From Ramazzottius varieornatus (lineage: Eukaryota > Animalia > Tardigrada): a stretch of 64,000 nt of DNA. The notes under the pieces were generated by a model. It was not told the DNA's origin, made no database searches, and saw only the letters and a program-made list of their open reading frames with translations. Position numbers and translations under genes: made by a program. Each line of letters opens with the position of its first letter. Position 1 is the stretch's first letter. The stretch covers positions 4,701,624-4,765,623 of the forward strand of contig BDGG01000001.1 of assembly GCA_001949185.1 (NCBI GenBank). The letters run 5' to 3'. Positions 1 through 37,354 of this stretch are shown here, piece after piece.

Positions 1-22
1 TGCAAATTACTCTCCGTTGCAG

Positions 23-3000
23 GTCCGTGGGCAACAACATGGTTCCGAGGTTTCCGAAGCTGCAAGAATGCGCGCACTTCCATTACGAACGAGTGGAACT
101 AACAGGCATACACGTATGTTGACGAAGAAAAACAACAGAGAAATTTGTGCCGAAGATGTTCATAAATATAGGACCGATACTCGGTAACGTAATGATGGCA
201 TGTTGTGACATGATAGAGTGAGCTAGGTTTATTTTGCAGTTACTAAAATTGATGATGGCGCTTTCTGCCGATTTTTCGCACAGACGAAACAGTGGCTCGT
301 TAGAGATGGTAGATGTTGAGGTGCCTTAGGCGAGATATGAAAGGTTTTGTGATTAGAATTGTAATGAGGACGTTGTGCTTTATCAGCGTTAGCTCTTGAC
401 ATGACACTCTGTAGCAGCTACTGTGGGTGGAATGAAGCGAGAACAAATTCACGCTGATTGTTTCTTCAGAGAGACTTCGAACGCGACTCTCATTGTCTAA
501 GCTCTCGATAGTCAGTGTGTCTTTTTGACTTCCTTAGGTGACGCTCTACGACGGAGTAGATCGCAGTGAAGTGGAGCCCAGCATTGCCTACCCACCGGAT
601 GCAGTGCTGGTGGAAGAACAGTACCAGAAGGCGAAGTATTATGGTGTGGATGATAACGGGGAAGATTGCTTTTTCACTCTTTCGGTAAAGAGTAATCACA
701 AGACTTGGCTGATTCGAAGAACTTTCGAAGAATTTTGCACGTTCGACCAGCAGCTGCACAAATGCATCTACGATCGCAGCTTTAGTCAGCTGATGGAATT
801 ATCCACTGCCGAAAACAACTCTGAGCAAATCGAGGTAAAGAAAAATTATTTTTGAATACATGATCCCGAATTTCATTGACGAATATGAGAATTTGAATTA
901 TTTTTGAAAATATTTCGAGTGTTCATATGTGTATGGGAATCGAGAAACCGCAAAGGTTCATCTCAGCTAGGAGAAACTTGCTTTACAACAAGCTGCGAGA
1001 GATTCACAGCCTGATGAACATCCGCCGGAATTAAAAGCGGTTTTTCTGGTTATGCTTTGCAGGTCCTCAAGGCTGAAGTGACTGTCTATTTGGCCCGATT
1101 CTCACAGCTAGCAGGCAATCTGATCAATTGCGCCCCTATCCTCAAATGGCTCGAAGTAAGCAGACTTTGTTTAAACTTTGTCGGACCGTTGTTTAGACAT
1201 TCCAACCAAGTGCAAATTCCTGTACAAGAGCTCCGATTGTACTCATCTCGTTTTTCACAGTTGGACAACCGTGGACACAGGCTCGTCGCTTTTGACGATG
1301 AATCGGCAATAAACACGCCGGCGATCGCTGCCGTCCACGTAAGAACCACTATTATCCATTTTATAGTTATCGCGGCGTTCTTTTGATTTTTTATTATATT
1401 TTGAGCGGTCAAAGAATGAACTGTACCATATCGCTTAAGCACCTGCATAGATCAGCACGCACATTTTCTGTGATGACTGGGTATGTGGGTGCTTGATGGT
1501 ATGGAAAATTCTCGCCGACCTTTCTTTTATGAGGTTTTCTTGCATTTATTTTTATCGCGGGTTTATTTTCTTTAGTGTGTGAAACGTTATATGCCACAAG
1601 CCGGCGACGAGCTGGCCTTAGAGGTTAGAGATGTTGATATCCTGAGTCTCCGTAGCAGCGATTGAGCACGATACGATAGAGTTTGATCCTTCGACTTTTG
1701 CGCGTGCGCTGCCTTGGGTCAAGATGTCGGCAGTTAAACGTCTTAATCGTAGGTTGGTGACATGATTTCGGTGATTGATATGCCTCCCCGTGACGAATCC
1801 GTCTGGTGGAGAGGCAAGAAAGAGCTGGATGTCGGCTTCTTTCCCAGCGATTGTGTCGAAGTTATTGCCGGCCATAACATCCCTTCTGCCAGTAACGGTG
1901 CTGGACAAAGTACTCGAAACCCTGGTGAGTCCTGTTTTGTTTATCGTTTCAAGTTTACAATAAACCTTTTGTCGAGAACTAGCGAGCTCTTCCTGAGCTG
2001 TACGATCTTTATAGAGTGCCAATAATCGATAAAAATAGCCGTAATAAGTTACAGTGATGATATAATCATCGTCATTCATGTTCCGAATATTGTTTACTGG
2101 TTACTGAATTTCAACAATACACTAGAGTGTTTTGGTTTCGCAGTGTTGAGAAGACGCGGGAAACTTACTGCATTCTTCCGGTCCTTTCTTTCGAATCGTC
2201 CTCCGCGACGACGACTGAAGGAGTCTGGAATACTCAAAGAGCGCGTCTACGGGTGTGACTTGGGCGAACACCTGTTGAACACAGGTCAGAAGGTTCCCGC
2301 CGTTCTCATTCACTGCAGTACGTTCATCGAAGACCACGGCATCGTGGACGGTGTTTACCGGTTGTCCGGCGTCTCGTCCAACATTCAGCGACTAAGACTG
2401 GAGTTCGACGCTGAGAAGATTCCCGACTTGACCGAAGAAGTGTACATGCAGGACATTCACTCGGTGTCCTCCGTGCTGAAGCTTTACTTCCGCGAACTTC
2501 CCATCCCCTTGTTGACCTACCAACTATACGATAAGTTCGTGTACGCGGTCAACACCAGCGAAGAAACGCGTCTTCTTCACATCCATGATGTTGTGAACCA
2601 ACTTCCGCCTCCGCATTTCCGGTAAGAAGTCTTTCAATATCGACAATATACAGCAACGTTTCATATGATTTCGTCCTACCGTACAACGAGCCGGGTAGAA
2701 TCATCCCCCGCCCTGCATAAGATTCCAATAGAACCAACTAGGTCGCTTGAAACCGGTTAATTTGTATACGCGCACCGTAAAAATTCGCTGCGTCCGCGCT
2801 GTCGGTCATCGTACACGTTAAGTACAGCCCCGGTCCGGGTTCACTGCTAGCACAATCCCATACGGGGTGCATCGTCGCCTACCGGTACATACTGCGCGGA
2901 CGCAACGAATTTTTACAGCTCTACTCGGAGCTGGTTTTGACATTGTTTTGATGTTTTGCACCCTGGTTTGCAGGACGTTGGAGTTTCTCATGAGACATTT

Positions 3001-6000
3001 GGCTCGCGTCGCTGCACTGGCCGATAAGACGGGGATGAACTCGAAGAATCTCGCCATCGTTTGGGCTCCGAATCTGCTTCGGTAAGTGCCCGACGGACTT
3101 TGAGTGGCAGTTCGTTTACTTCGTAGCGCATACAGTTTTTGTTGTGATTGAGAAAAACCTGAAAAAGCCTGGTTATTAGTCTGTTATTATCTTCGGCGTC
3201 TTTGTAGGTCTTCCGAAATGGAAAACAGCGTTGAGGCGTTAAAGGGCGTTGGCGTGTGCGCCATTGCGGTGGAATACTTGATCCGCTATGCCGACTTGAT
3301 TTTCAGCTCGCGACTGCATACTTCCTCTCTTCTCGCGCGAAATGGTACGTTGTACTAATGCCGTGTACCTGTCCGTTTCTCGCTCTTAGTTACAAGTTTA
3401 TGCTTGTACCTCGCCACTATAATGCTCGTGGTGCTAATGGAATTTACATAGGTAACACGCCAAAGTGCCTCAACCGGCCGAAGTCTTTAGCTGTCTCGAC
3501 ACCTACGAAGCTGCTGAATATGGAAGATGCGCGAGCTCTGGGTTTAGGACATACGTCCGCCTTTGATCAGAAATTCATCGAAGTCGGAGAAGGCCCCGGT
3601 AACCTCCCCAAATATCACACCGTCATCGACCTACCTAGCAGGTAACCAGTTGGGAGCTCAGCAAACAAACTGGACAGGATCCTTTCTTTAAAAGGCGCAC
3701 GTTCTCAGTGATATTGTCTGGAAGCGTGTGTCACTTCGGAAGATGATTTGGTCGAATTTGTTTGCCGAGCTCTGATTCTACGGTAGTTTGTCTCCATACT
3801 GTTCGACGATGGTCAAACTCGTAGTTTTGAAATTCTGCCTCATGGCCGGAAATCTGACTAGTGATGTTTGTGTAGGAACAGAAGGCGTAATGGTGGCAAA
3901 GGTTCGATTTCCGGTTCAGAGAAGTCTCCTTCCGGTTGGCGCAACCTCTTTGGACCAAAGCACCGCAAGCAAAACTGGCCTTCGCGATCTCCACTGGATC
4001 TCACCGTGAGAGTCTTGGGTGCTTCCACTCTTCCTAATTTGAGTACTCAAGACCCCCAGACGTTGGATAATTCTTCAGTGTCCTCTGGGACATCTCCGGG
4101 CTCCTTTAAGCGTCGAAAACTTCGATCGTCTGGCCGGGCTCACTCTGAGAACATGTGCTCCTTGCCATGTGTCTTTGAGAACCCGAAACTTAACCTGGCT
4201 TCTACTCCGAAAGGCCCTCCTGCCGTCCGACGAGTTCCGCTCGTGACTCTGAACCAAATTACGGGTAAGGAAGCTCAAATGAAACGTCCAGAATACAGAA
4301 CTTACAGCTTTCACCAACCTACATACACACGTCTCATTTAGGACATGCGGTTTACTGTATGCAAGATGATATGGAGCTGGAGATTCTCTGATGGGGGGCA
4401 TTAAAATCTGTTTGTGCTTACAGGTGAAGGAAGTGGCACTCCGAACAGATCGACAAGTCACGAGTCCTTCTTCGAAGGAGGAGGCATCTGTGACGGTTTC
4501 TCTAAGAAGCTCCTCCTAGAACAGAAGACGGTCGATGAAGTGGTGCGAACTGTTCCATGTAACCTGGTGGAAGGTGGTTGCCTGGTCAAGCTCAACTTCA
4601 TTGACCACGCTGACGAACCTTCCGCCAATCGATTCCAACCATCCTTCTCCATCCGGGAGTCAGTTATCGAAGAGCTTCCTGGCGCTGACGACCTCAATCA
4701 AAACCCCGTCAGAGAGCTGCCGGCCGAAATCCATCACGAACTAAAGTTCCAGAAAAACGCCGAGAGGCGCCTGCATCGAACACTCTCGCCAAAATTCCTA
4801 CGCCAGTACCGTGCCGGTGAACCAGAGGAACTTTCGCTGTCTAACGGTAAGAATATTCTCGTTTGATATTCAGCTATTGTTTTGCTCTTGGTCGGTGCTA
4901 GTATCAGTATTTGGACCTAGGCAAGCAAACGCGACAAGATCGTTTCCCCCAAGTGGCGCACTAAACAGCCAGTAATACGGAAATGTGCGCCGCTTGAGAA
5001 AAATAAAATCAGCGAGTGTGTTTACCGAGTGTGAGCCTCCATTTGAGTACTGTGATCAAATATGTATACTGTTTTATCTCTTTAGTGTTGGATTCGCCTG
5101 GGTCTTCGCGGTTGAAACGCTCTCTAAGCACGTCTCCTGTCCTGACTAGGCGTCAGCCAGATGCTGACTTTTCGATGACTTCCAGATCGAAGGAGGAGAA
5201 AGCGGAGAAGGACAAGTCGCGACGGAAGTCCCTTCGTCGCATGACTTTGGAGGAGACAGTCGACAGCACCCTTTCCAAAGAACCTTCGTTGGATGAGCCT
5301 GCTATACCGGTAGAGTACGACTTCCATGTCTCGCAGGATGAGTCCAGCCACCGCTTTGGTTGTTCGGAGATGGAAATGTTCGATGCAATTTGCGCTGAAA
5401 TTTACCAGGAAGCACCTGGACCAAACGACGACGCTCTGCACATTCCAGTCAATCCCAAAGAAGCTGAACATAACACTATCACTCTCCCTTCTTCCGCTGA
5501 CAGCCAGCCAGACCTAGTGACCGATGAAAAACCCGCACAATATACATTCAGTCTCGAGCAGCTCCATGACATTTCACAGTTGGGAGAAGTCCAGAGTGTC
5601 CAGTTGAACAGACAAAGTACGTCCTCGGGTGAAGTCTCTCCTAGTCTGACACAGCTCTTTGCGACCCCAAGAACTTCCGAAATATTCCCAGAGGTCCCGG
5701 GTCCGCTTAATCACAATTCCACTGACTATCTTCCGCCACACAGTCAACATACTTTTGGGTTGGTTAGTATGCCGGTCGATGAACCAAGTAAAGACAGTCC
5801 GCCTGTAGCTGAGGAAGTTCCCACGTCAGCTGTGTACTTTTACGGGCTGACGTCTCCAGGGGAAGAAAGCGCGACGGAGGATGAAAAGAGCGAAGAAGTG
5901 CACAGTTTGAACGACGACGACGACGTGATGGTCCGAAGTGTCGACCTGAAGGCTCTTCGCGATACCTTCTTCGGTCTACCGTCAAGCCATGATCTACCGT

Positions 6001-7100
6001 CTCAAGAGGAGAGTGAAGAGCCATCTGTCGGCTTGCCTTCGGGTATTCCGCTCGACGGAGCTCTCAGAGTGCAAGCGGAAGTCTTTAGCCCGATGAGCGA
6101 TACGACATCATACTCTGCTGCCACCAAGACGTTCGACATGATCGATCTTCACAGTGAGACAGCGTGGAAAGACAACGCCGAGACAGTGAAAGCAATTACC
6201 GTTGATGAGATCGATGCATCAAGTAGCAGCAACATGTCACACTTGACCGCTAACAATAACGACAAGAAGGAAAGCGCTGTCGATGCCGTTGAGTACTTGC
6301 TGCTTCTACGGAAAGCCACACTGTCACCATACGAAAGCAGCCAAAACACACAACCACCTCCGGTCCTTCCTTCACCAGCTAGTCAGATTCATGATGAAGA
6401 GAACCATGATCGTGTCTCGCTGTGCTCGACTACCGACGACGAAAAGATTAGTGTCAGATCACTGCGCTGTAAGTTCGAAAGCGGAAAGAGACGACCGCTG
6501 GCTAGTTCTGAACCAGCCAGTGCGGTTGATTGCCCGATGGGACGACCGGCCACTTCCGGTACCAGTTGTGAACCAAAAAGTGCCATTGATTGCTTGAGTG
6601 AACGGTCGGCTGATTCTGATGGAAGAAAGCATTCGCAGACTCATTTGGCTCCCCGAGAAAGCCTCAAACAGAAACTGTCCACGTTGAGTAACATGTATCG
6701 AGAGTCCTCTAGTCCTTTTGCAGAACCTAGGGTCGAGGAAGATGGGAGAAAGAACTGTGGCGGCAGATCGGACTTGCCAGTGAAGTTGAAGCCGCCACCG
6801 AGTTCCTTCTCAACTGTCCAGTCTGTCAAGACCTTCCCTCTTACCCGACCTTCTGTCTTGCCTACGATCGTGACCAAAATTGAAGGTGGAAAGTCTGAGG
6901 ATATGGAGAAGGAAGGTGTAGCAAGCAAGCCGTCGGTGAAGGTACGAGAAATGCGAAGAATGTACGAAAATGCTCAAGCAGCGAATGAGCACGAGCAGCG
7001 AAGCGGTAGTGATGGCTCGGACTCGCCGCCGTCACACCCTCAACGAAGTGGAAAAGTAACGCGACTAAAAACCTGCCAACAACTTTTGTCGTCGCTGTAA
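23..7100 (+). CDS. ARHGAP32/33 (RICS/TCGAP, Drosophila CdGAPr)-like Rho GTPase-activating protein: PX - SH3 - RhoGAP - long disordered tail; about 13 exons, 5' end possibly outside the window
   Basis: Exon 23-113 RFPKLQECAHFHYE; PX exon 538-834 (WLIRRTFEEFCTFDQQLHKCIYDR); SH3 split over small exons (AAVH|CVKRYMPQAGDELALE|VGDMISVIDMPP..WWRGK..VGFFPSDCVE); GAP exon 2144-2621 (GIVDGVYRLSG, LKLYFRELP) and 2973-3081 (KTGMNSKNLAIVWAPNLLR); terminal exon 5085-7100; GT-AG junctions keep frame. Confidence 0.9.
1441..1490. repeat. Bipartite inverted motif copy 1: ACCTGCATAG-N30-GTATGTGGGT (RhoGAP intron 1339-1575)
   Basis: Arms 1441-1450 and 1481-1490; spacer counted as 30 bp. Confidence 0.8.
2773..2920. 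mobile_element. ~150-bp MITE-like element in RhoGAP intron, CACCGTAAAAA-type end (CMC/EnSpm-like)
   Basis: ~27-bp inverted repeat: gtaaaaattcgctgcgtccgcgctgt ... actgcgcggacgcaacgaatttttac; no clear TSD. Confidence 0.6.
4317..4366. repeat. Bipartite inverted motif copy 2: ACCTACATAC-N30-GTATGCAAGA (RhoGAP intron ~4265-4423)
   Basis: Arms 4317-4326 and 4357-4366; spacer 30 bp; most degenerate copy. Confidence 0.7.
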
Positions 7101-7169
7101 GCTTCAACACAATCTGTTTTTCCTTTCTTGTCGGTTTTGTTTACTCTTCATGTACAAGCGGAAGCGGTT

Positions 7170-7193
7170 TCTCTCTCTCTCTCTCTCTCTCTC
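7170..7193. repeat. (CT)n microsatellite just downstream of the RhoGAP stop codon
   Basis: About 12 TC/CT units. Confidence 0.95.
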
Positions 7194-7940
7194 GTGAAAA
7201 GTATGTTCTTCGGTCCCTGGTATCGGTGATTTTTGATTTGTTATCGCGTTGTACAGTTCGTTTTTCTCTCCGAATGAGTTAGCAAGATGGATGATTAAGT
7301 GTCATAAAACTAACCTGTGTAAGTTTTATTACAACCGTACCCAGTAATCTTATCGCGAAACGGAAAGCCACGTCCGCAGTCGTTACGTTCCCGGCCAGAT
7401 CAATAAGCTTCATTTGCTCTCGACAGTGAGATGGCTTCAACGAACTGACCACCGGTCATCCTCATTCAATTTCTTGACTAACGTGACACAGAAATCAGAT
7501 AATATCGATTTTTGACTGCATGTGTAAAATGGCTGACCAGTGACCGCTTGACCAGTTCGCGAAACACAATGGCCAGTGCGGTGTACGCTTGTTTGTACCT
7601 GTACGAGTGACGTACGAGCGTAACTCTCGGCTGTATAACCGCAACGACCAAAACCGGTTTGCTGTCGTCACATCCACCGTGTTAATTTCCCAGTTGCTTA
7701 CCAGATTAACGGCAGTAAGTTGGATACGATCTTACTTTCAGGCGTGATTTGATTGTCAAGAGATGTCCTGCAGGTTTTTAGCCACATGCGCATGCGCTGA
7801 GATCTTGTTCATCAGCTTCAGTCTATCAATGTTTACCTGGTCGATGGATTGACCTGATGGATAATTATTGTTACGATGTGCGTATAAACACTCTTCCGTT
7901 TTTTCTTCCAGGTTGACTTGGAGCGAGGAAAGCAGCACGA

Positions 7941-10900
7941 ATGGTAGCCCTGGAGGCTGCACAGATCACCAGGTCATCGGTGGACAACATGGAAGTGGCT
8001 CCCAACAACGAGGCTACATCTGCTGCGCACACCAACCATCGCAATCGTCTAGCAGCCTTGAAATCTTCCTTCGAGAGTGCAGCAAACTCCAGCGTATCTG
8101 CAGGAGGAGACAAAGTGGCTACTGGAATAATACGACGGCCCACGCGTGAAGCAGTACCGAGGATTGCTAGTTTGTTCCAGACGAACGTGACAGGTGGTCA
8201 TACTCCAGCTAGCAATAGCTTTTCTCCTGATCTCTACCAAGAACTCTCATCCACCTCAAAGCAACATCTTCCGACGGAGGAAAGTGCATCTTATTCTGAG
8301 AAGGAAAATGTTCCAGTTGAACGACAAAGCTTTCCTGCAAGCGGTGATGCCAGCCGGACGCGTTTGATTGTGGACAGCGATAGAAGACGATCTTTCCCCG
8401 TCACCAGCAACACGCCGTCCTGCGATTCTTCAAATCTTACGCCAAGGAATACCAGTGCAACCGTGGATGATCATGTAGCACGCTTCCAGAATGCCAAAGA
8501 GTTCTTCTTGAAGAAAGAGGAGAGCAGTCGAAATCAAAGCACAGGAGGTACGTTTATTCATTCACAGCAGCGCATGATGTCATTCGCGTGTACAGAATAT
8601 CATGTGTTTATGTAGTCAGTACCGTACTAGCTTATGACGTGTTGCGCGGGTATTTCGCGCTTGCATGGATTTCGGTTTTGATCAGCTTGTTTCGGTAGTC
8701 AACTAATCAACGGTACAGTATTGAGCTGCAGCGTTGATATGGAGTGGGTAGTGAACCGTTCTGATGAACTCTGACGAATATTGATGTCCGTACTTTGCCT
8801 GCACATCGCGACGCATCTCGTTCTGCCTCAATAGACCTCAATATATTCACGTTTTGAGAGCTGGAGATTCGAACTAAGTGATCTTGTTGCTGTTGCAACG
8901 GCTTGTGAGCGGTAACAAAAACATTTATTGTAATGGGTCGATCCATAATTAAGTGGTGCTCATAAGCGACCACGACAGGTTGACACATTTAAGACCGTAA
9001 TTGAATATAGCATTGGACACCTCACGCTGCTCCGTGCTTTCTAGGTCTCTTTCGATCTCTGTTGCTCCACTTTCTTATTCAGTGCGTGAGTTATGTTTTC
9101 ATTGCAGGCAATATCACATCTAGCCGAGCGGCTCGAGCGACCCACGCCACCAGTCCGTCACCCCGCTTCAACAAACCCGGCAGCCCTGACATTCCGTACC
9201 GCAATGGCTCACCTTCTCACCTCGGCGCTGGATCAAGGGTCTCTGACGGAAGTTCGCGATCACGAAGTGCCAGTAGCTGGATCAACCGGGATGCCTCTCG
9301 TCAACGATCCAGCAGCGAGTCCCGAATACCGTCCACCAGACCGGACTTGATTCCCAGCCTTGAACCTAGTCCCGACAAGAAAGGTTCGTTCTTTCCTTTA
9401 TCAGCCGTCGCTTTGGCCTCAAATCAACCGTTAACGTTCTTTCTGTCGGTAGATGATTCCTCTTCGGTGGACTGTTCCGAAAGTGACCAAATCTTCCAGC
9501 TCAATCAGGGTTCTCCATCTCGGTCAGAGAACCAAGTTTCCGAAAACATTTCTCAAGTGGATTCTCCGCGCATTCTTTCTCCTGTTAAGACTTTAGCGAA
9601 CAGCTTTTCCTCTTTAAACGAATCAAACAGGGTCTCAGACATTTCGAGAAACTCTTTTCTCGCACAAAACGAGTCCGAAGAACGAAAAGACTTCCTAGTG
9701 GACGACGCAGTTTCCTCGTCAAGGTTCTCGTCATCCACTTTCACTCCTAATGAACCCGTCCAGAGAGAACGTCCTTGGAGTTCGCAGGAACGACCTCACA
9801 GTGCCCAAGAAAGCGATGGGTCGAGTCCGACACCCTCTACCAACCTTCTATCTGGGTTGACGAAGCCGCCTCGTGTTTCCGAGCCTGTAATTGAACCGGA
9901 CGATCTGGAACTGATGACAGAAGAAGAGCAAAAAATATTCCTGCGTGGAACCGATTCCTTTGAAGACAAAGGTAACGAAAGCGGTGAACTTGGCGAACAA
10001 CTCAACATCGTAGACGAGGTAACCGGAAACTTACACGCATTTTGCATATCTGAAACGATTTTTCCCCAATGAATTTCAGTAGTTTTTCCCTTTTTGAATA
10101 GAAGTTACTGTTGGAAGGAGGACTCAACGGGGAAACCTACGTAGACGATGCCGGTGACTCGTCTGCCACGGAAGAAGTGGAGGACGATGAAGAGCCCGCA
10201 CACACGGCAAGTGTTGACATCCGCCGAGATCGCGGTCGTCGTCGTAACACTGACTTTTTCGGAGCAGACGCCGTAGCTGCGCTCATGAAGGACGAACCAG
10301 CCTCGACCATCTTTGATCAGTATCCGCTGACGATGCTTCATGATGGCCACTACTACGTCGAAATGCCCATGCCACAACGGGACCATCATGACAAAGAGGT
10401 TTGTGTCTTTCTCATCGAAACCTTGTCGGAATCAATTATAGTAACTCGATTTGTTGACTGCCCGCCGTAATTTAAAGCTTCGGTTTCTGGTGATTTTGGT
10501 GGTCAGTCAATCAAATTTACCTGCATACACAAAGATGCGCGATCGCCGTTGTGGCAGAGTATGCAGGTGCAAGGACAGTTGACTCATGTACCTGCATAAA
10601 TGAAGACGCAAGTGACGGGCGGTTGGCAAGTATGCAGGTTTATGAAAAACGGAATGAAAATTTTGTCGCTTTTACATTCTTTGGTATTTTGTGTATGTTT
10701 TATCTGTCTGATTGCTTGCTTTTGCAGGACCATTATCCGGCCGATCTTCCACCGAGGAGTTTCAAGCTTCGATTCAACCTGGAGACAGTACGAGTCTTCA
10801 GCACGCACTCCATGTACGAGTACGATCGTACCAACAGCGAAGTGGACCCAGTGGCTTCGTCAGCAGAGTACGAACTGGAGAAACGTATTGAGAAGATGGA

Positions 10901-13508
10901 TGTCTTTGAAGTCCAGCTGATGAAGGAGCCCGGTGGCGGCCTGGGGTTGAGTATCATAGGTATGGGAGTGGGAGCTGACGCGGGCCTGGAGAAGCTGGGT
11001 ATTTTTGTCAAGAGCGTCAGTGGACCGGCTGGCGTCGATGGAAGGATCCAGGTGAATGATCAGATCATTGAAGTGGACGGTCAGAGCTTAGTAGGAGTCT
11101 CCCAAGCTTATGCTGCTCAAGTTCTTCGCGCCACTCAGGTGAGCCGTTAATTTCGTTTCGGTACTTTTGCCTATTTTCTACGAAATATTAATACCTGACA
11201 AGGCCGTGATCGACACCAACTTGACTGGTATTACCGTAGAAAATGGGCGAAATAAGCTTAACGCCCAGAATAACTCTTGAGGGTATTCGTACAGTGTGAA
11301 GTTCTTGATGATAAACTTGCAAATTTGTCTTGCATTCAGGGCCAAGTGAATTTCTTGATCGGAAGGGAGAAAGGAAACGAGAAAAGTGAGGTAGCCTTGC
11401 TGATCGAACAGTCACGGGCTCGGGATCAGGAGCGAGAAAGACAGATGCAGTTGCAAGCGGTCGAAGATGCGCGGAGGCAGGAGTTGAGAAGTGGTGGGCG
11501 GGGACGACTGTCAGATATCCATGGATCACCCGGCGAAGAAGGTCTGGAAGATGACGATAGCGATATGGACCAGTTCGAAGAATCGTACCCACATGAACCA
11601 CGCACTCCAACGGCGGACCTGGACGGAGAGCTGGGGGCACAGTACTCTCGACAGGCTACCAGCTTGTCACCGGTCGAGTTTGACATCGACAACCTCAAAC
11701 TGAGACGTAAGAAAAGTTTTCAAGATTAAGATCCTGAATATTATAAAGTTTCGATTTAGTATTGAGTTGTTGTATCGCAGTGGCCGAAGCTCAACAGTTT
11801 AGTTCTACGGCTGAAGTAGAAGTCGAACGTCTTCGAAGCAAGCTCTTGGAGTACGAAGGGGACGCCCACAAGTCAGAAGAGCTGATAAGAACGGTCAACT
11901 TGATGAAGACCCAGTTGGCGGAAGCGGAAGTCAGTCATCGCTCAGCGCAGGAAGCCGTCGATAGTAAACAGGTAAGCAACTTTCATTGCATTTGTAAAAT
12001 CCAAGAAAGGAAGTGAAGAGAGTTTTCCTTTGTGTGCTTGTAGAAAGAGTTGGCTGCGGCTCAGGAGAACTTGAAGTTACTTGAGAGGAAGTACAACCGA
12101 GCCAAGAAAGTCATTCGCGACTACCAGCAGCAGATGGAGCAACGGGACCGAAAGTACAACTCGATTATCACCGACATGACGAAGACCATCACCAGCCTAC
12201 AGTACAAGTTGGGAGAGCAAGGAGTAGTTGGTCCTCAGCTCTCACTTCCTAACAAGTCTCCGCTCCTGCCTAAGGCTGTTCTGGACCAACTACTTGCTGA
12301 AAACGACCTATCTGATACAGAGGACGCTGACCTCAGCTTAGCCTCCTCCGCCAACTTTTCAGGTACGAAACCAGTCAACCGACTTCCGGTCGACAGGTGC
12401 AATCTTTCTCTTTTCGTAGCTTTCGATGAGTCCTTCTCCAACCTGGTCCCTGAAACCCAGCTCCTGGACAACACGGCTGCTCGTTCGAGAGCCGACCTCG
12501 TCAACAAAGGTAGCTTGGCTGCCCGTCAACCTCCCTCCACTAAGCGGCAGTCTTTAGAGTTCGACTCCTCGTTCGAAGGACCAGCACGAAAGATCAGTCA
12601 ATCCGGCCACTCTCGTCGTCCCTCAGATCCTCCGCCAGCCGTCCCTGCCCGTCCTCCTCGAGGGACTTTCCCTCGATCTTCCAGCGCTAGAAGCCGAGAA
12701 GACAGTATCATCTCATCAGTGACGAGCGTCACTAGTTATAATGGTAGCGAGATGACCACCGAAACTGGCAGTCTACACACTGTTACGTCTCCCTCGAAGT
12801 TCAGTCCTTTAAAAAATCCGAACTTGGCTTACGCGTCCCTCCCTCGATCCTTCACACGTGGCCGCGACACGGGTAAGCTTTTCTGTCCAGAAGGGCAAAG
12901 AGATTCGATGTCCGTCGCTCATCTGCATACAGCTTTATCAGCCGAAACAAGCTTGTATCGGTATGCAGGTGTTTGCTGCAGTGGCCCAAGATGCACTGTC
13001 AGTCACCTGCATACATCTGACATTCACATGATATGCGGAGACGTGTGTGCAGGTGGTTGAAGTGGTCTTTCTCGTTGTTGACTGATGGTATACTGCAGGT
13101 TTCTGTTTCTTAGCAGGTGAGTCTTCGGATTCGGCTTCCATGGCCAGTGGCAGTAAACACAGTACTCCAGAAAAGAAGTACCAAGGCACAGTTGACGCGA
13201 CAGACTGGACAAGCCACGACGTCAAACAGTGGCTACTGAGTTTCGGTCTCAAGCAGCACATTCCGACTTTCTGCGACCAACACAACATGGATGGACCAAA
13301 GTTGATGAATATGGATAGTGAAGGACTCAAGGCTCTGGGTGTGACTAGCAGTGCCGAGAGAGCCTTCATGAAGAAGAAGATCAAGGAGCTTCGAAGTGTC
13401 TTGGAGAAGGAACGAAGAAGCGTCGAAAAGCAAAGAAAGGTCCAGGAGAAGCTGCTGAAGAAGAGCGCATCGTCTGGTGGCTCTCCGCTCAAGAAAAAGT
13501 CGCCTTAG
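7941..13508 (+). CDS. PPP1R9: Neurabin/spinophilin (PP1 regulatory subunit 9 family): actin-binding N-terminus, PP1-binding motif, PDZ, coiled coil, SAM
   Basis: N-terminal RIASLFQ / [11 protein letters not shown]; exon 10728-11138 [78 protein letters not shown]; coiled coil [17 protein letters not shown]; SAM domain [16 protein letters not shown] in exon 13118-13508. Confidence 0.92.
10519..10639. repeat. Bipartite inverted motif copies 3 and 4 in tandem (neurabin intron 10399-10727)
   Basis: ACCTGCATAC 10519-28 / GTATGCAGGT 10559-68; ACCTGCATAA 10590-99 / GTATGCAGGT 10630-39; both spacers 30 bp; 21 bp between units. Confidence 0.9.
12921..13054. repeat. Bipartite inverted motif copies 5 and 6 in tandem (neurabin intron 12872-13117)
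   Basis: ATCTGCATAC 12921-30 / GTATGCAGGT 12961-70; ACCTGCATAC 13005-14 / GTGTGCAGGT 13045-54; both spacers 30 bp; 34 bp between units. Confidence 0.9.
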
Positions 13509-14103
13509 AAGGAAAGGTGGGAAGGTGAGCTCCAGAGAAAAGAACAGCCAACGTCCATGTTTTTACTTTTAGCCCAGTTCTTGTGTCACAACAAAAAGTG
13601 GCATTGTTGGTAATACAACACTATCTTTTATTACAATAGTCTTCTGTCCAAAAACATTGCCTTTATCTAATGGGCGTTCCTCTTTGTAGACTTTCCCACC
13701 GTTACTGAAAATGTCCAGTACGTTTGTACAAAAGCTTTCTGGCTCATTTCTTTTCCCTTGATTGTTAACGCCACCGTGGTGCTACGTAACTTACGTTCTT
13801 CAATTGGCTCAGTTTAAACGGTTCGTACCTTACTCGTTGCTGACGTTAAATATGATGTTAGAGTACTGCGTGCTGTCGGTTCTGGTTTTTTTGTTGGTCC
13901 ACTTCCTGTTCTAGACTTTGGTCTTGAGTGGCGTAGGTCAGCAGACCATTCACCGGTCCGCTGTTTCGAGAGATCGAAATCTTATTCCAGCCGGTCTCCC
14001 TTTCGAATTCATTACGTTAGTCCACAGCTATTTACTGTATTTTGTCAGCCTTCTTGGGTACAAGCTCATATCCTAGTTGACTGTTAGCAAGGGCCAAGGA
14101 ATC

Positions 14104-15883
14104 ATGGGGAGTGAGGGAAGGACCATCTTCCGTGTGGGCTCAAGACGCAGTCAGGTTGGTAAATCTTATCACATGTTGGCTAGGAATTCTCTGGACCAGA
14201 TACTCTGGCTTATTGCAGCTGGCGATGGTACAGACCAAATATGTGATCGGATGCTTGAGTGCGATCTATGGACCTTGCTACCAGTTCGAAATAGGTAAGA
14301 CCAAGCTAGCAGGCAGTTCTGCGGAAGTATCATATTTTTACCTGGAATCTCAAGAAAGCAAGTTGCCATTGTTGCTGACCAATTCTTTCCGTTATAGTTG
14401 AAATGGAAACCATCGGGGACAAAATACTGGGCACCGAACTTTCTAAGGTTCGACTATACTTGTGTCTCGGGGCGACTCATCTCATCGGAGTCGAAGCTGC
14501 TTCCGAGATACTCCACTGAAGTGGTTTGTGAATTGTTCCACAGATCGGAGAAAAATCGCTGTTCACAAAAGAGCTGGAAACGGCTCTCGAGTTACGATTG
14601 GTGGATTTTGTCGTTCATTCGCTAAAGGATCTCCCCACGGACCTTCCGGCCGGAATGACCATTGCAGCTATCCTCTCGTACGGAGTTTACTTCGACCACA
14701 GCTGACCATTTTTTGTTGAAGTCATAAGGGTACAGTTGACATTTTGCGCTGGTCTTAGACGGGAGAATCCGCAAGATGCCGTGGTGATGAGAAAGGACCT
14801 AACGTGTGGTAGCCTCCGCGACTTGCCACCTGGAAGTGTTCTAGGAACAAGCTCTTTGCGCCGCGCTGCTCAGCTGAAACGAATTTATCCTCACTTGGTC
14901 TTCAAAGACGTGGTAAGGTCAGAGTTTATTCACCGCAACCTCTGCTTAGATTGAGCAGATACGTCACAAAACAGTATTCCCCTGCTGGATCTACCGTAAT
15001 GTCGGTTAGTGTATTTAGCGCGGGAACCTGAACACGCGGCTAAGGAAGCTGGACGATCCTAGCCAGGAGTATGACGCGCTAATTTTGGCCGCAGCCGGAC
15101 TGCTACGTTTGGGATGGCTTGACCGCATATCCGTGGTACGTCCTACAATAACGTTCACTCAAGCGAAACTTTAACAGGTTTTTTGTTATTCGAAGGTTCT
15201 TCCGGCGGAGCAGTGTCTGCATGCGGCAGGACAAGGCGCATTAGCTGTGGAATGCTGTACGGAAAACAAGGCCGTACTCGACCTTCTCAGCCCATTAGTC
15301 CATCCGGAAACCACGATATCCTGCGTCGCCGAACGAGCCTTCCTCAGATACCTGGTAAGCTGTTCACTACATTCTCACCGGATGATTCCTGGATATTGCT
15401 CTGTCGCAGAATGGAGGATGCAGTGTTCCGTGCGCCATCGCCAGCCAACTTACCGGAAACCAGGTAAGATTCCGTGTTTCACTACAATACTGTAGTGTAC
15501 TCTAAGTGCATGTCTGAAATCTGTCACTTTTTCAGTTAATGATAAGGGCGGGAGTTTACAGCCTGGACGGATCTCAGGCTGTGGAGGACAGTCTCTTGAT
15601 AAGGCTCGACGAAGAAGACCCAACTGGCGATGCATCCCAATCGAGCACGGATGCGTCGCTAAGCTCGTTAATCTCATTGAATAGTTCCTACGTCAGTATT
15701 CATCCACAAAGCCTCGATTACAAAGCACTTCGTGCGGCAACGGAAGGTGGCATGGCCATGGGGAGGAAACTGGAGGCCAAAGGTGCCCTACCCATCTTGC
15801 AGGAAGCGCGAGCCCAGGCTAAAACAGCCAACATTCCCAGCATCGTACCCAGTCGAACAGAGCATTCAATTTTGAGATTCTGA
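14104..15883 (+). CDS. HMBS: Porphobilinogen deaminase (hydroxymethylbilane synthase), multi-exon
   Basis: [88 protein letters not shown]. Confidence 0.95.
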
Positions 15884-16066: not shown

Positions 16067-17194
16067 ATGAATTGCTGTCAGGATATCAATGCGTTATTCA
16101 AAGATGAGATCTCTTGTATCGAGGGCCGGATGTGGGACCAGACAGGTCCGTATCGCGGAAGTGGTTTTGTCAAGGAGGAACTTGAACGCTTGATTGATCA
16201 TATGGGAGCACAAGCCGCTAAGGTCAGCAGTTAGTTCTACTCACGCGACGCTATTCAACACTTCTTCAAAACATGCGTACCATATGACTTGTCGATTATT
16301 GTAAATCTGGTGTCGTAGTGTCAGGGACTAGACTTTCCTTTGACTTCATCAGAAATGTTCCTCAACACTCCACAAAGAATTTACGTCCTGAAGTTTCCTC
16401 GGATCTACAAGTAATGAGTCGACCGCGAAAACGACAACTTCCTCGGTCGAGTTGTCCAGCCTGACACTGTAACTGTATTGCAGCATGAAAGGAGCCATCC
16501 TGGGCTTCATCCGTTGTGGATGGCGGACAATGGGCATCGTCGATCATGAAGGCTTTCTTCGCAAACTCGACATGCTTGTACTGTATGACGTTTACGTTGC
16601 CCAGAAGTTCCGGCGACTGAGACACGGACGGAAGCTCCTTGATTTTGTTTCACGGGTAAGTTTAAAACGGGAAACTGCAAAATCGAGGAAGAAAGTACAG
16701 TTCATTTGGAAGAAGCAAATGCATTCACGAGTATTTCTCCCTGTTTGCTTAGCATGAAAAGGTAGCGATGCATCATATGGTCCTTGATCAGCCCTCGTCG
16801 GCTTTACTACAGCTCTTTATGAAGCACTACTACTTACGAGATTTCGTCACGGTGGAGACCCGTTATACCATATGGAAGCGCTTCATGGACGAACAGAGAC
16901 CGGCATCCAAAGTGGGGGGTACGCTGTAACTTCTCCCCTTCATATGCACCATCTAAGGCTACCGTTTTCGCAGTTCGACATTTGAATACCGGTCACACTT
17001 ACACCACGAACCCTCGGGACTATCTGGGAGGACCTTGGCCGATCAGTTCGTCAATAGGCACCAAAGTCGAGCATCCCTTTGTCAACTGGCATCAACCAAC
17101 CACTTGTGTTCCCGGCTATCACTACGAGCTTTCACCTTCACAGCAGAGGTGGGTTCCCAGCACAACACCGGTGACACTGTACAGTCTGGATTGA
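16067..17194 (+). CDS. Divergent alpha-tubulin N-acetyltransferase (ATAT1/MEC-17 family), 5 exons (16067-16222, 16319-16410, 16484-16655, 16753-16918, 16974-17194), ~268 aa
   Basis: DINALFKDEI..LIDHMGAQAAKCQGLDFPLTS..RIYVLK..KGAILGFIRCG..YDVYV..RRLRHGRKLLDF..HHMVLDQPSSALLQLFMKHY follows the ATAT1 GNAT domain in order; junctions keep frame. Confidence 0.85.
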
Positions 17195-17895
17195 CATAAG
17201 CTCGTGATACCTGAACCTTCCTGTTCTTTTTCAGAATATACAACAATCGAATCTACAGGCACGACAACAGCGACAAGGCGACAGCCCTTCACAAAATGCG
17301 CACATCGCATCATCCCTTCTCTTGGACATAGCAGGAATGAGCGTTTCAACATATTTGTGTGGTTCGTTGGAAGTTGTATTCCGATAGCCCTCATCGCGCG
17401 CCCGTCTACATATATGCGTAGACACGTCTGTCAAGTTTCGCTGTCACCCGAGCTCACGCTCGACATGACTCGACAGTCAACTGTTAGCAAGAAAATCGTG
17501 AATAAAGGATGATACCGTTTTTTGCTTTTAGGCAATGTGTCAATAAGAGTTCTTCTTTGTCATCAGCAGCCACTTACTCCGTGCAATATGACACGCGGCT
17601 TTCCCAACTTGTCCTCCCTAACTTCCCCTCAAACGAGGTCCCATAACCGGTCACATCATGCAATCGGTGCCTTTTGTGCTGTATCGACCTTCATCAACTG
17701 TTTGCACTTGGACTTTACCCTCAACCTCTCGATATCCTCTCAGACGTCATCGGGAGGAAGCTCGGCAAGGAAGGGAGGACACAGCTAATACATGAATATT
17801 CTCGTGCGTCGCAGAATATATAGCTTTAGGGTAGAGGGTGCCCTGATGAATTGCTTATGGGTCCTTCCAAGATTGCCTGTTGTAATCCCCATTGA

Positions 17896-36283: not shown

Positions 36284-37354
36284 TACGATGCATCATATGG
36301 TCCTTGATCAGCCCTCGTCGGCTTTACTACAGCTCTTTATGAAGCACTACTACTTACGAGATTTCGTCACGGTGGAGACCCGTTATACCATATGGAAGCG
36401 CTTCATGGACGAACAGAGACCGGCATCCAAAGTGGGGGGTACGCTGTAACTTCTCCCCTTCATATGCACCATCTAAGGCTACCGTTTTCGCAGTTCGACA
36501 TTTGAATACCGGTCACACTTACACCACGAACCCTCGGGACTATCTGGGAGGACCTTGGCCGATCAGTTCGTCAATAGGCACCAAAGTCGAGCATCCCTTT
36601 GTCAACTGGCATCAACCAACCACTTGTGTTCCCGGCTATCACTACGAGCTTTCACCTTCACAGCAGAGGTGGGTTCCCAGCACAACACCGGTGACACTGT
36701 ACAGTCTGGATTGACATAAGCTCGTGATACCTGAACCTTCCTGTTCTTTTTCAGAATATACAACAATCGAATCTACAGGCACGACAACAGCGACAAGGCG
36801 ACAGCCCTTCACAAAATGCGCACATCGCATCATCCCTTCTCTTGGACATAGCAGGAATGAGCGTTTTTTGCGGCTTTCTCTGCTGGTAATCCGTTTCAGA
36901 ATGTATTCAACAGATCTGGGGTTCGTGAGAAGTTGCATTCCGATAACCCTAATCGCGTGGCCAACGACATATATGGGTAGACACAACTGTCAAGTTCCTC
37001 TGTGACATGAGCTCACGCTCGACATGACTCGACCTGAGCTCTTGCGGCTCCTTACAGTCCAGTTTCGCCCTGCTGTGTAGCCGTCCTCGTCATTCCAATC
37101 CGTCCATTCAAAGCTTGCCTACTGGACAATATCCCAAAATCTTTGTGTTTATGGTTTACATGGCAGATTGAAAAAGCTTTTTCGCAAGTATGATGTTGCA
37201 ATGGCAGCGAAAACTTCGGAAAAACTATCTAAATTTGAAGAAGAGAGAAAGCGATGCTGATCATTTACGAACGTTTACGAACATCATTTGCTTGATGCTA
37301 GTTTTGAGTGAGCGATTCCGAAAGAGTAAGCGACGTCTGTCGAACCGCAACAGT

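Follow-up and report, generated by a model that had tools for sequence, protein, structure and literature searches.

Inverted-box units with a 29-30-bp centre in the introns of Ramazzottius varieornatus: an old family resembling miniature inverted-repeat transposable elements, possibly maintained by a DNA-binding protein

The bacterial REP and BIME elements are very short non-coding palindromes that occur in hundreds of conserved copies, lack a target-site duplication (TSD), and are bound by protein. In mammals, CTCF sites derived from SINE B2 illustrate how a mobile element spreads a protein-binding motif, and the recombination signal sequence (RSS) of V(D)J recombination consists of the heptamer CACAGTG and an A-rich nonamer, placed 12 or 23 bp apart. 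This study concerns a family of DNA units in the tardigrade Ramazzottius varieornatus in which two inverted boxes, ACCTGCATAC and GTATGCAGGT, face each other across a centre of 29 or 30 bp. Six such units lie in a stretch of 64,000 nucleotides of contig BDGG01000001.1 (C1; positions 4,701,624 to 4,765,623, forward strand; hereafter the window), and the family was followed from there through the genome. Most likely, the units are transposon-derived and constrained at once. The reading preferred here, to which a probability of roughly 45% is given, is that they form an old family resembling miniature transposable elements with inverted repeats (MITEs), whose boxes and geometry are maintained by a putative, probably dimeric, sequence-specific protein and not by an RNA hairpin.

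A search of the window for ACCTGCATAC-N30-GTATGCAGGT with at most three arm mismatches returned exactly six 50-bp places, all of which had been pointed out in a preliminary description made from the letters of the window. Their arm mismatches are 3, 3, 0, 1, 1, and 1 in coordinate order, exact copies of the 10-mers within the window are confined to these six units, and none of 100 dinucleotide-preserving shuffles of the window (0/100) contained any match. Genome-wide scans were performed on the R. varieornatus assembly of 55,842,812 bp in 200 contigs; the published assembly, of 55.8 Mb, comprises 199 scaffolds together with the mitochondrion (PMC5034306). Perfect arm pairs separated by 1-120 bp were found at 284 places, versus 0 for the reversed control. 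Among the 50 of these places listed, 44 have spacers of 27-32 bp, and in the other 6 the match bridges two neighbouring units, pairing the left arm of the one with the right arm of the other. With at most one arm mismatch, spacers of 28, 29, 30, and 31 bp were counted 41, 237, 403, and 92 times, respectively, with 0 in all controls; the mean is 29.7 bp and the standard deviation ~0.75 bp. The spacing peak at 29-30 bp, for which the preliminary description had proposed to scan the genome, is real and sharp. The spacer of exactly 30 bp holds within the window, and genome-wide 30 is not invariant.

The size of the family was estimated in two ways. With a 30-bp spacer and up to three mismatches, 991 places were found genome-wide. 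A single binomial, with ~11% of arm sites changed, accommodates the ratios of perfect to one-mismatch units (27:65 at N31 and 12:29 at N28) as well as that of units with at most one to those with two or three mismatches (403:588 at N30), and it extrapolates to ~2,400 units. A position weight matrix (PWM) was also run over 264 kb of unselected DNA, consisting of the 64-kb window and C1:1.0-1.2 Mb. It detected 18 units above 14 bits (15 at 29 bits or more, one at 25.8, and two at ~16), versus 0 in the control, and 16 of the 18 exceed 25 bits; this density corresponds to ~3,400-3,800 units genome-wide. The family thus comprises roughly 2,500-3,500 units and is spread across many contigs (controls 0).

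The half-site extends beyond the 10-bp arms that had been described. In a profile built from 76 halves it reads TTCAYG-N-ACCTGCATAC-A-c, so that the palindrome reaches outward past the core and the whole unit measures ~64 bp. Conservation of the outer T, C, and A amounts to 63-70% at each position, and on the inner side the A and c are followed by c-Y-G at seven to nine bases into the centre; the profile carries no information beyond position -7 or in the middle ~12 bases of the centre. With the half-site mirrored on both sides, the terminal inverted repeats (TIRs) are 16-17 bp long. In the 264 kb of unselected DNA, the observed/expected ratio of CpG is 1.01 and that of TpA 0.67; given the CpG value, this sample shows no sign of germline CpG methylation, and CpG decay is an unlikely source of the Y/R positions. 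Among 50 linkers at junctions listed, CACG occurs on 7 left and 0 right flanks and CGTG on 2 left and 7 right flanks; because of this mirror pattern, the outer motif is to be seen as an extension of the TIR and not as a direct duplication. In agreement with the earlier remark that no consistent TSD is visible, no direct repeat above chance was found for offsets of 0-15 and lengths of 3-8, although a 2-bp palindromic CG is indistinguishable from the TIR extension. Old age could have erased the TSDs, which fits with neutral flanks being saturated. When the outer flanks were examined for a larger surrounding element, with profiles at fixed offsets and by 6-mer enrichment, only decayed neighbour units and splice donors emerged. 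Many canonical splice donors stand 8-60 nt from units outside the window, supporting an intronic position there too, and wherever the context of a unit was readable it proved to be non-coding, in most cases an intron that the unit occupies some tens of bases from the edge.

Most units in unselected DNA are grouped as pairs or triplets, and 61 perfect arm-to-arm junctions at most 70 bp apart occur genome-wide. The linkers measure 15-54 bp with a mode of 21-25, giving a period of 71-74 bp. In 5 of 15 neighbour pairs the centres are more alike than in 93-100% of unrelated pairs, four of them in direct and one in inverted order, and several further related-centre pairs, including an inverted one, were recognized by eye among the perfect-arm places listed. 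Since related centres occur in both orders, neighbours often are local copies made at differing times and in either orientation. By eye, the 50 linkers listed peak at 21-25 bp and form looser groups at 31-37 and 40-45, in steps of about a helical turn. Including its linker, a unit pair spans ~135-150 bp, which is near one nucleosome.

The centres and the boxes have decayed to very different degrees. Centres match pairwise at 10.3/30 positions, versus 9.4/30 for shuffles. The spacers, earlier called largely unrelated, are indeed nearly random, but they are not wholly free, since a faint but significant residual consensus remains. An oriented model of the centre gained 64 nats over a symmetric one, versus 35 +/- 3.5 in simulations, and with one unit per cluster (23 independent units) the gain was 48.5 versus 32 +/- 4; therefore, a faint oriented ancestral centre survives, and one ancestral element followed by deep decay is the simplest history. 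Copying of the centre from the flanking DNA was rejected, the centres being unlike the adjacent sequence. The arms that played no role in ascertainment (in unselected DNA those opposite a perfect arm, and at junction-selected loci the outer ones) are ~82-84% identical to the consensus. Expressed as Jukes-Cantor substitutions per site, the arms stand at ~0.2, the outer TCA at ~0.45, and the centre, taken at positions whose commonest base reaches at most 40%, at 1.2 or more, which makes the centre at least 6 times faster than the arms. In four junction-selected sibling pairs, the selection-free arms carry 10 changes in 80 sites where ~21 are predicted from the centres (Poisson p ~0.01). The outer flanks of a unit often match poorly even when its arms are perfect; therefore, perfect arms do not mark young copies. 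The usual ratios of indels to substitutions would predict several indels in each centre of such divergence. The length of the centre has shifted by at most 1-2 bp despite its near-saturated sequence. The geometric constraint proposed at the outset is thus supported, with the centre length kept within ~1 bp and the arms far better preserved than what they enclose. Among the ~75 perfect-arm centres listed, no two are alike. Searches of the own genome by BLAST with five units found no near-identical sibling, a result that excludes near-identical copies only, as the search misses a neighbour of ~80% identity.

Such constraint might act on RNA or on DNA. If it acted on RNA, the unit would be a pre-mRNA element, i.e., an intronic stem with a 30-nt loop that affects splicing, masks the splice-site-like GTATGC or CAG|GT in the arm, or releases a ~30-nt RNA; a stem-loop of this kind was among the roles first suggested. 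The arms do fold well as RNA stems (z -4.5), as hairpins are expected to because the arms are inverted repeats, the units with readable context are intronic and often lie 8-60 nt 3' of a 5' splice site, and within the window taken alone most arm mismatches leave a G-U pair possible on the sense strand. Strand and pairing were assessed in 38 units (the window, L001-L020, and L021-L035), for which a rough model of coding potential supplied the gene strands. No sense-strand wobble bias emerged, as the sense and antisense strands carry 9 and 10 G-U-compatible mismatches in the core arms and 16 and 12 in the outer extension. Changes in arm pairs are one-sided in 60 cases and compensatory in 2, with ~1 expected by chance. 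The wobble symmetry and the lack of a compensatory excess argue against selection for pairing, be it in RNA or in a cruciform, and favour a reading of the sequence itself. Correction of one arm by the other (quasi-palindrome correction) was rejected on the same counts, 60 one-sided versus 2 two-sided matching changes. Moreover, the arms are identical on both strands, so that the same stem forms in either orientation, and the centre begins with A and not with U, unlike a Piwi-interacting RNA. An Rfam scan of window positions 1-14500 at permissive E-values, another check proposed earlier, left the units unmatched and gave two chance-level matches elsewhere. In 20 units the faint consensus of the centre points the same way as the inferred gene strand, and in 8 it points the other way (p 0.036), which would suit a transcribed element but may reflect a composition skew of introns and not a bias in insertion or selection. 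Action of the unit as an RNA hairpin is not supported, and a pre-mRNA role is considered very improbable. A DNA-level alternative is that the boxes are recombination or excision signals, at which some cells would invert or excise the sequence that the arms enclose or that surrounds them, in the manner of an RSS, an internal eliminated sequence, or a recombinase site. The architecture alone, inverted sites with a measured spacer, would suggest this, as would the five related-centre neighbour pairs, one of which is inverted. However, the half-site profile contains neither heptamer nor nonamer, and a spacing of 29-30 does not obey the 12/23 rule, which leaves no resemblance to an RSS. The core sites of tyrosine recombinases, at 6-8 bp, are far shorter than the spacer seen here. 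Programmed DNA rearrangement has, to our knowledge, not been reported in tardigrades, and it would be most surprising if this explanation were correct.

Two further explanations accept a mobile origin. The units may be a purely selfish, long-lived MITE family, in which arms and spacing are needed only for mobilisation, the centre drifts along old lineages, and copies decay neutrally after insertion without any host function. The TIR-like arms, the thousands of dispersed copies, and the local copies in either orientation all suit this, as does the presence of a unit inside hAT-type library consensus sequences in the part of the library covered, which suggests mobility; furthermore, the arm mismatch counts fit a single binomial, and the 72% centre identity of the best sibling pair (L035) is compatible with neutral decay at the arm rate. 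Nevertheless, at least ~1,000 independent source lineages would be needed; no two of the ~75 perfect-arm centres listed are alike, and the five units tested returned no near-identical sibling (with copies of ~80% identity escaping the search). In addition, the TSDs are gone although the arms have changed by only ~11%, and in recognized sibling pairs the arms have changed about half as much as the centres. This explanation is thought somewhat unlikely. Alternatively, the centres may have differed from the start, if copying reproduced the arms and the measured gap and filled the ~30 bp with new or heavily mutated sequence without a TSD, for example by a hairpin or single-strand insertion that might loosely resemble bacterial REP/RAYT or IS200/IS605. 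A binomial decay of the arms as after one burst, the lack of a TSD, the hairpin-forming arms, and the essentially unrelated centres would all follow. Yet we know of no mechanism in animals that copies arms plus gap, the centres are not copied from flanking DNA, a faint shared oriented consensus persists, and the graded centre similarity of neighbours fits ordinary copying followed by decay; differing centres from the start are accordingly regarded as quite improbable.

Under the preferred reading, that of an old MITE-like family maintained by a protein, an ancestral palindromic non-coding element of ~64 bp would have been dispersed and copied locally. Its box pair would be read as DNA sequence by a putative dimeric protein, either the mobilising transposase or a derived host protein, with a distance of 39-40 bp presumably maintained between the centres of the two cores, and with secondary contacts possibly provided by the weaker patches outside (TCAYG) and inside (C-Y-G). 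Recognition by this protein may have preserved the boxes and their geometry while the centre decayed. Reading by a protein is suggested because the conservation falls off as in a binding-site matrix, from a strong core of 10 bp to weaker patches ~10 bp away on each side, and because it is strand-symmetric and distance-sensitive. The contrast of the preliminary description between a MITE and a selected site hence proves to be a false choice, as the family has 16-17-bp TIRs, thousands of dispersed copies, and local copying. The constraint may act in place, through a host function, or only via propagation of the element. In favour of constraint in place are the lack of TSDs, the faint consensus of the centres, and the comparison of sibling pairs; both the propagation-only reading and that of centres differing from the start stay alive because the arms decay along a single binomial and the samples are small.

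Several points weigh against protein-maintained boxes. The binomial arm mismatches would also fit a single burst ~0.12 substitutions per site ago, if the centres differed initially. The slower decay of arms in place depends on few pairs (p ~0.01), and the arms were partly used to find the units; likewise, the strands in the G-U test come from a weak coding-potential model. The distance of 39-40 bp between half-site centres, earlier described as close to four helical turns, corresponds to 3.7-3.8 turns and is not a whole number. Lastly, purifying selection on thousands of intronic sites is a strong claim for a parthenogenetic animal. A bolder version of the reading would place ~3,000 ACCTGCATAC-N29/30-GTATGCAGGT dyads under purifying selection as docking sites of a putative dimeric protein, which together with a sister family spaced at N25 might form an animal counterpart of REP/BIME or a lineage-specific code of chromatin architecture; in this form the proposal is judged unlikely.

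The six units of the window, none of which is assigned to a strand, are accommodated as two single units and two pairs. The first single unit (1435..1496; PWM score 35.2) has its arms at 1441-1450 and 1481-1490 around a 30-bp centre with 3 mismatches; its outer flanks pair (gcttaagc / gcttgatg), and its DNA hairpin is predicted at -14.2 kcal/mol (z -4.2). The second (4311..4372; arms 4317-4326 and 4357-4366, 3 mismatches, PWM score 36.1) is the most decayed among the six. In the first pair, the unit at 10513..10574 has perfect arms (10519-10528 and 10559-10568; PWM score 39.0), and a BLAST search of the own genome with it returned the self-match only. Its partner at 10584..10645 (1 mismatch, PWM score 45.1) follows at a period of 71 with a linker of 21 bp and has flanks, tcatgt / ttatga, that fit the outer motif. 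The weak likeness that had been noted between the spacers of these two units (10519 and 10590) reflects relatedness, with a direct score of 5 that a fraction of only 0.012 of unrelated pairs equals. The second pair consists of 12915..12976 (arms 12921-12930 and 12961-12970, 1 mismatch, PWM score 36.9) and 12999..13060 (1 mismatch, PWM score 42.5; period 84, linker 34), whose centres are unrelated to each other. The tandem gaps of 21 and 34 bp agree with those first given.

The intronic location claimed for all six units could be established for three introns on the forward strand by their GT..AG ends and phase continuity. The first, in a gene with a RhoGAP domain, spans 4265..4423 (159 nt, phase 1, ends GTAAGG..ACAG), joins the open reading frames (ORFs) 3868..4341 and 4414..4866 in phase, and contains the unit at 4317 in its middle. 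The second (10399..10727; 329 nt, GTTTGT..TGCAG) joins ORFs 10111..10470 and 10551..11150 in phase 0 and contains the 10519/10590 pair. The third (12873..13116; GTAAGC..TTAGCAG) lies directly 5' of a SAM-domain exon, contains the 12921/13005 pair, and is 241-244 nt long, its end being at 13113 or 13116, with continuous phases of the flanking ORFs. At 13111-13119, this intron has a tandem TTAG|CAG| (NAGNAG) acceptor, both choices of which are in frame. For the unit at 1441, only the 5' boundary of the host intron is defined, by a clear GTAAGA donor at 1339. In the three resolved introns, the arms lie 48-120 nt inside the 5' end and leave at least 43 nt before the 3' end, and each intron has its own donor (GTAAG or GTTTG) and YAG acceptor.

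The host genes encode RhoGAP and SAM domains. The RhoGAP-domain gene also includes an open exon of 694 codons (5016-7100, forward strand) without a Pfam domain; a search with its 694-aa product found no match among 1.84 billion representatives, and the exon is probably a fast-evolving disordered region. A homolog search with an ORF of 424 aa gave no match, a kinase exon on the same contig matched solely the R. varieornatus protein RvY_00358 (hypothetical protein, 100% identical), and a search with a GTPase exon recovered relatives at only ~25% identity. Elsewhere in the window, two segments of ~600 bp each (16796-17396 and 36316-36916), 19.5 kb apart and in the same orientation, are ~94% identical, which may represent a segmental duplication of local origin or an exon block that is repeated.

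If it is in place that the boxes are kept, thousands of constrained non-coding dyad sites with a putative reader would exist in a compact animal genome. The family would then offer a ready example of a mobile element exapted en masse, testable with the CRISPR tools that exist for this tardigrade (DIPA-CRISPR, PMC11175437). If they are kept by propagation only, the family would represent an extreme minimum of mobile-element sequence, i.e., two boxes and a ruler. Under either reading, repeat annotation that builds consensus sequences misses the family, and a visible share of intron length is unexplained in current libraries.

For comparison with catalogued elements, the curated repeat library of R. 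varieornatus and H. exemplaris was used (PMC11071193, supplementary file 3). In the part of that library covered, the family has no entry of its own, in keeping with the earlier remark that it was not recognized as a described element, and the two 10-mers occur only in ramVar1 entries, inside hAT-type and unclassified consensus sequences (PMC11071193). Consensus-building software is expected to miss a 64-bp unit that lacks a centre consensus, which would account for the missing entry. In the same part, the hAT-type consensus ramVar1-394/356 contains one unit, as do the raw families 362 and 144; a further unit is found in raw family 111, and a lone left-arm 10-mer in another raw entry (PMC11071193). 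In the hAT-type non-autonomous consensus (ramVar1-394, ramVar1-356, ramVar1-362.raw, and ramVar1-144.raw), the unit is located ~60 bp from sequences like the sister-family boxes GTGCGCCAC / GTGGCGCAC; in these entries the arrangement looks like a captured piece of a MITE-bearing intron, or like nested insertions. The sister family itself, from the same genome, has the core AAGTGGCGCAC-N25-GTGCGCCACTT, seen in that part of the library as ramVar1-21.raw, and GTGGCGCAC boxes at N25 (PMC11071193). Both families consist of two inverted 10-12-bp boxes at a fixed distance in introns, but they differ in box sequence and in distance (29-30 versus 25). As far as these entries go, the sister family also has a recoverable consensus including the spacer and a library entry, whereas the N29/30 family is almost without a centre consensus.

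In the literature searched, the motif was absent in any relevant context, and no introners or MITEs of such kind were linked to tardigrades. A scan of metagenomes for the dyad gave 9 contigs, none of them related to the family, since each holds either a long perfect palindrome from another organism or a hairpin artefact with an Illumina adapter. Three (L036, L037, and L042; metagenome JAAUYG01) carry a ~90-bp near-perfect palindrome of another organism with the same core ACCTGCATAC...GTATGCAGGT, a fully palindromic centre, and flanks that differ from the tardigrade units; L038 is a hairpin with Illumina adapter and an assembly artefact.

Among described systems, the units resemble MITEs in being short and non-coding, in their thousands of dispersed copies with TIRs in the introns of a compact genome, in their local copies, and in the one copy nested in the consensus of another transposon. 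On the other hand, ~64 bp is unusually small for a MITE, a TSD was not found, and no autonomous partner is known; unlike in a neutrally decaying MITE, the interior is nearly free in sequence while boxes and length are preserved. The units are not introners either, as in the three introns with resolved ends the splice sites are not supplied by the ends of the element, and from the V(D)J signal they differ in both motif and spacing. They are reminiscent, by analogy, of bacterial REP/BIME in their small clusters, variable linkers, and short palindromic units; however, REP/BIME are bacterial tight stem-loops without a 30-nt free loop, and RAYT systems use a Y1/HUH enzyme and recognize their element as hairpin DNA in single-stranded form, no such enzyme being linked to the units here and no search for one having been made. 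The SIRC of Arabidopsis, in the part of their report covered, are direct repeats in longer cassettes near centromeres, but share with these units short conserved repeats, diverse spacers, and a proposed origin from MITE structure (PMC10342631). In SINE B2/CTCF, binder and function are known, whereas here both are putative and a long gap of measured length separates the halves of a dyad motif; nevertheless, much as in transposon-borne transcription-factor or insulator sites, the motif appears to have outlasted the rest of the element.

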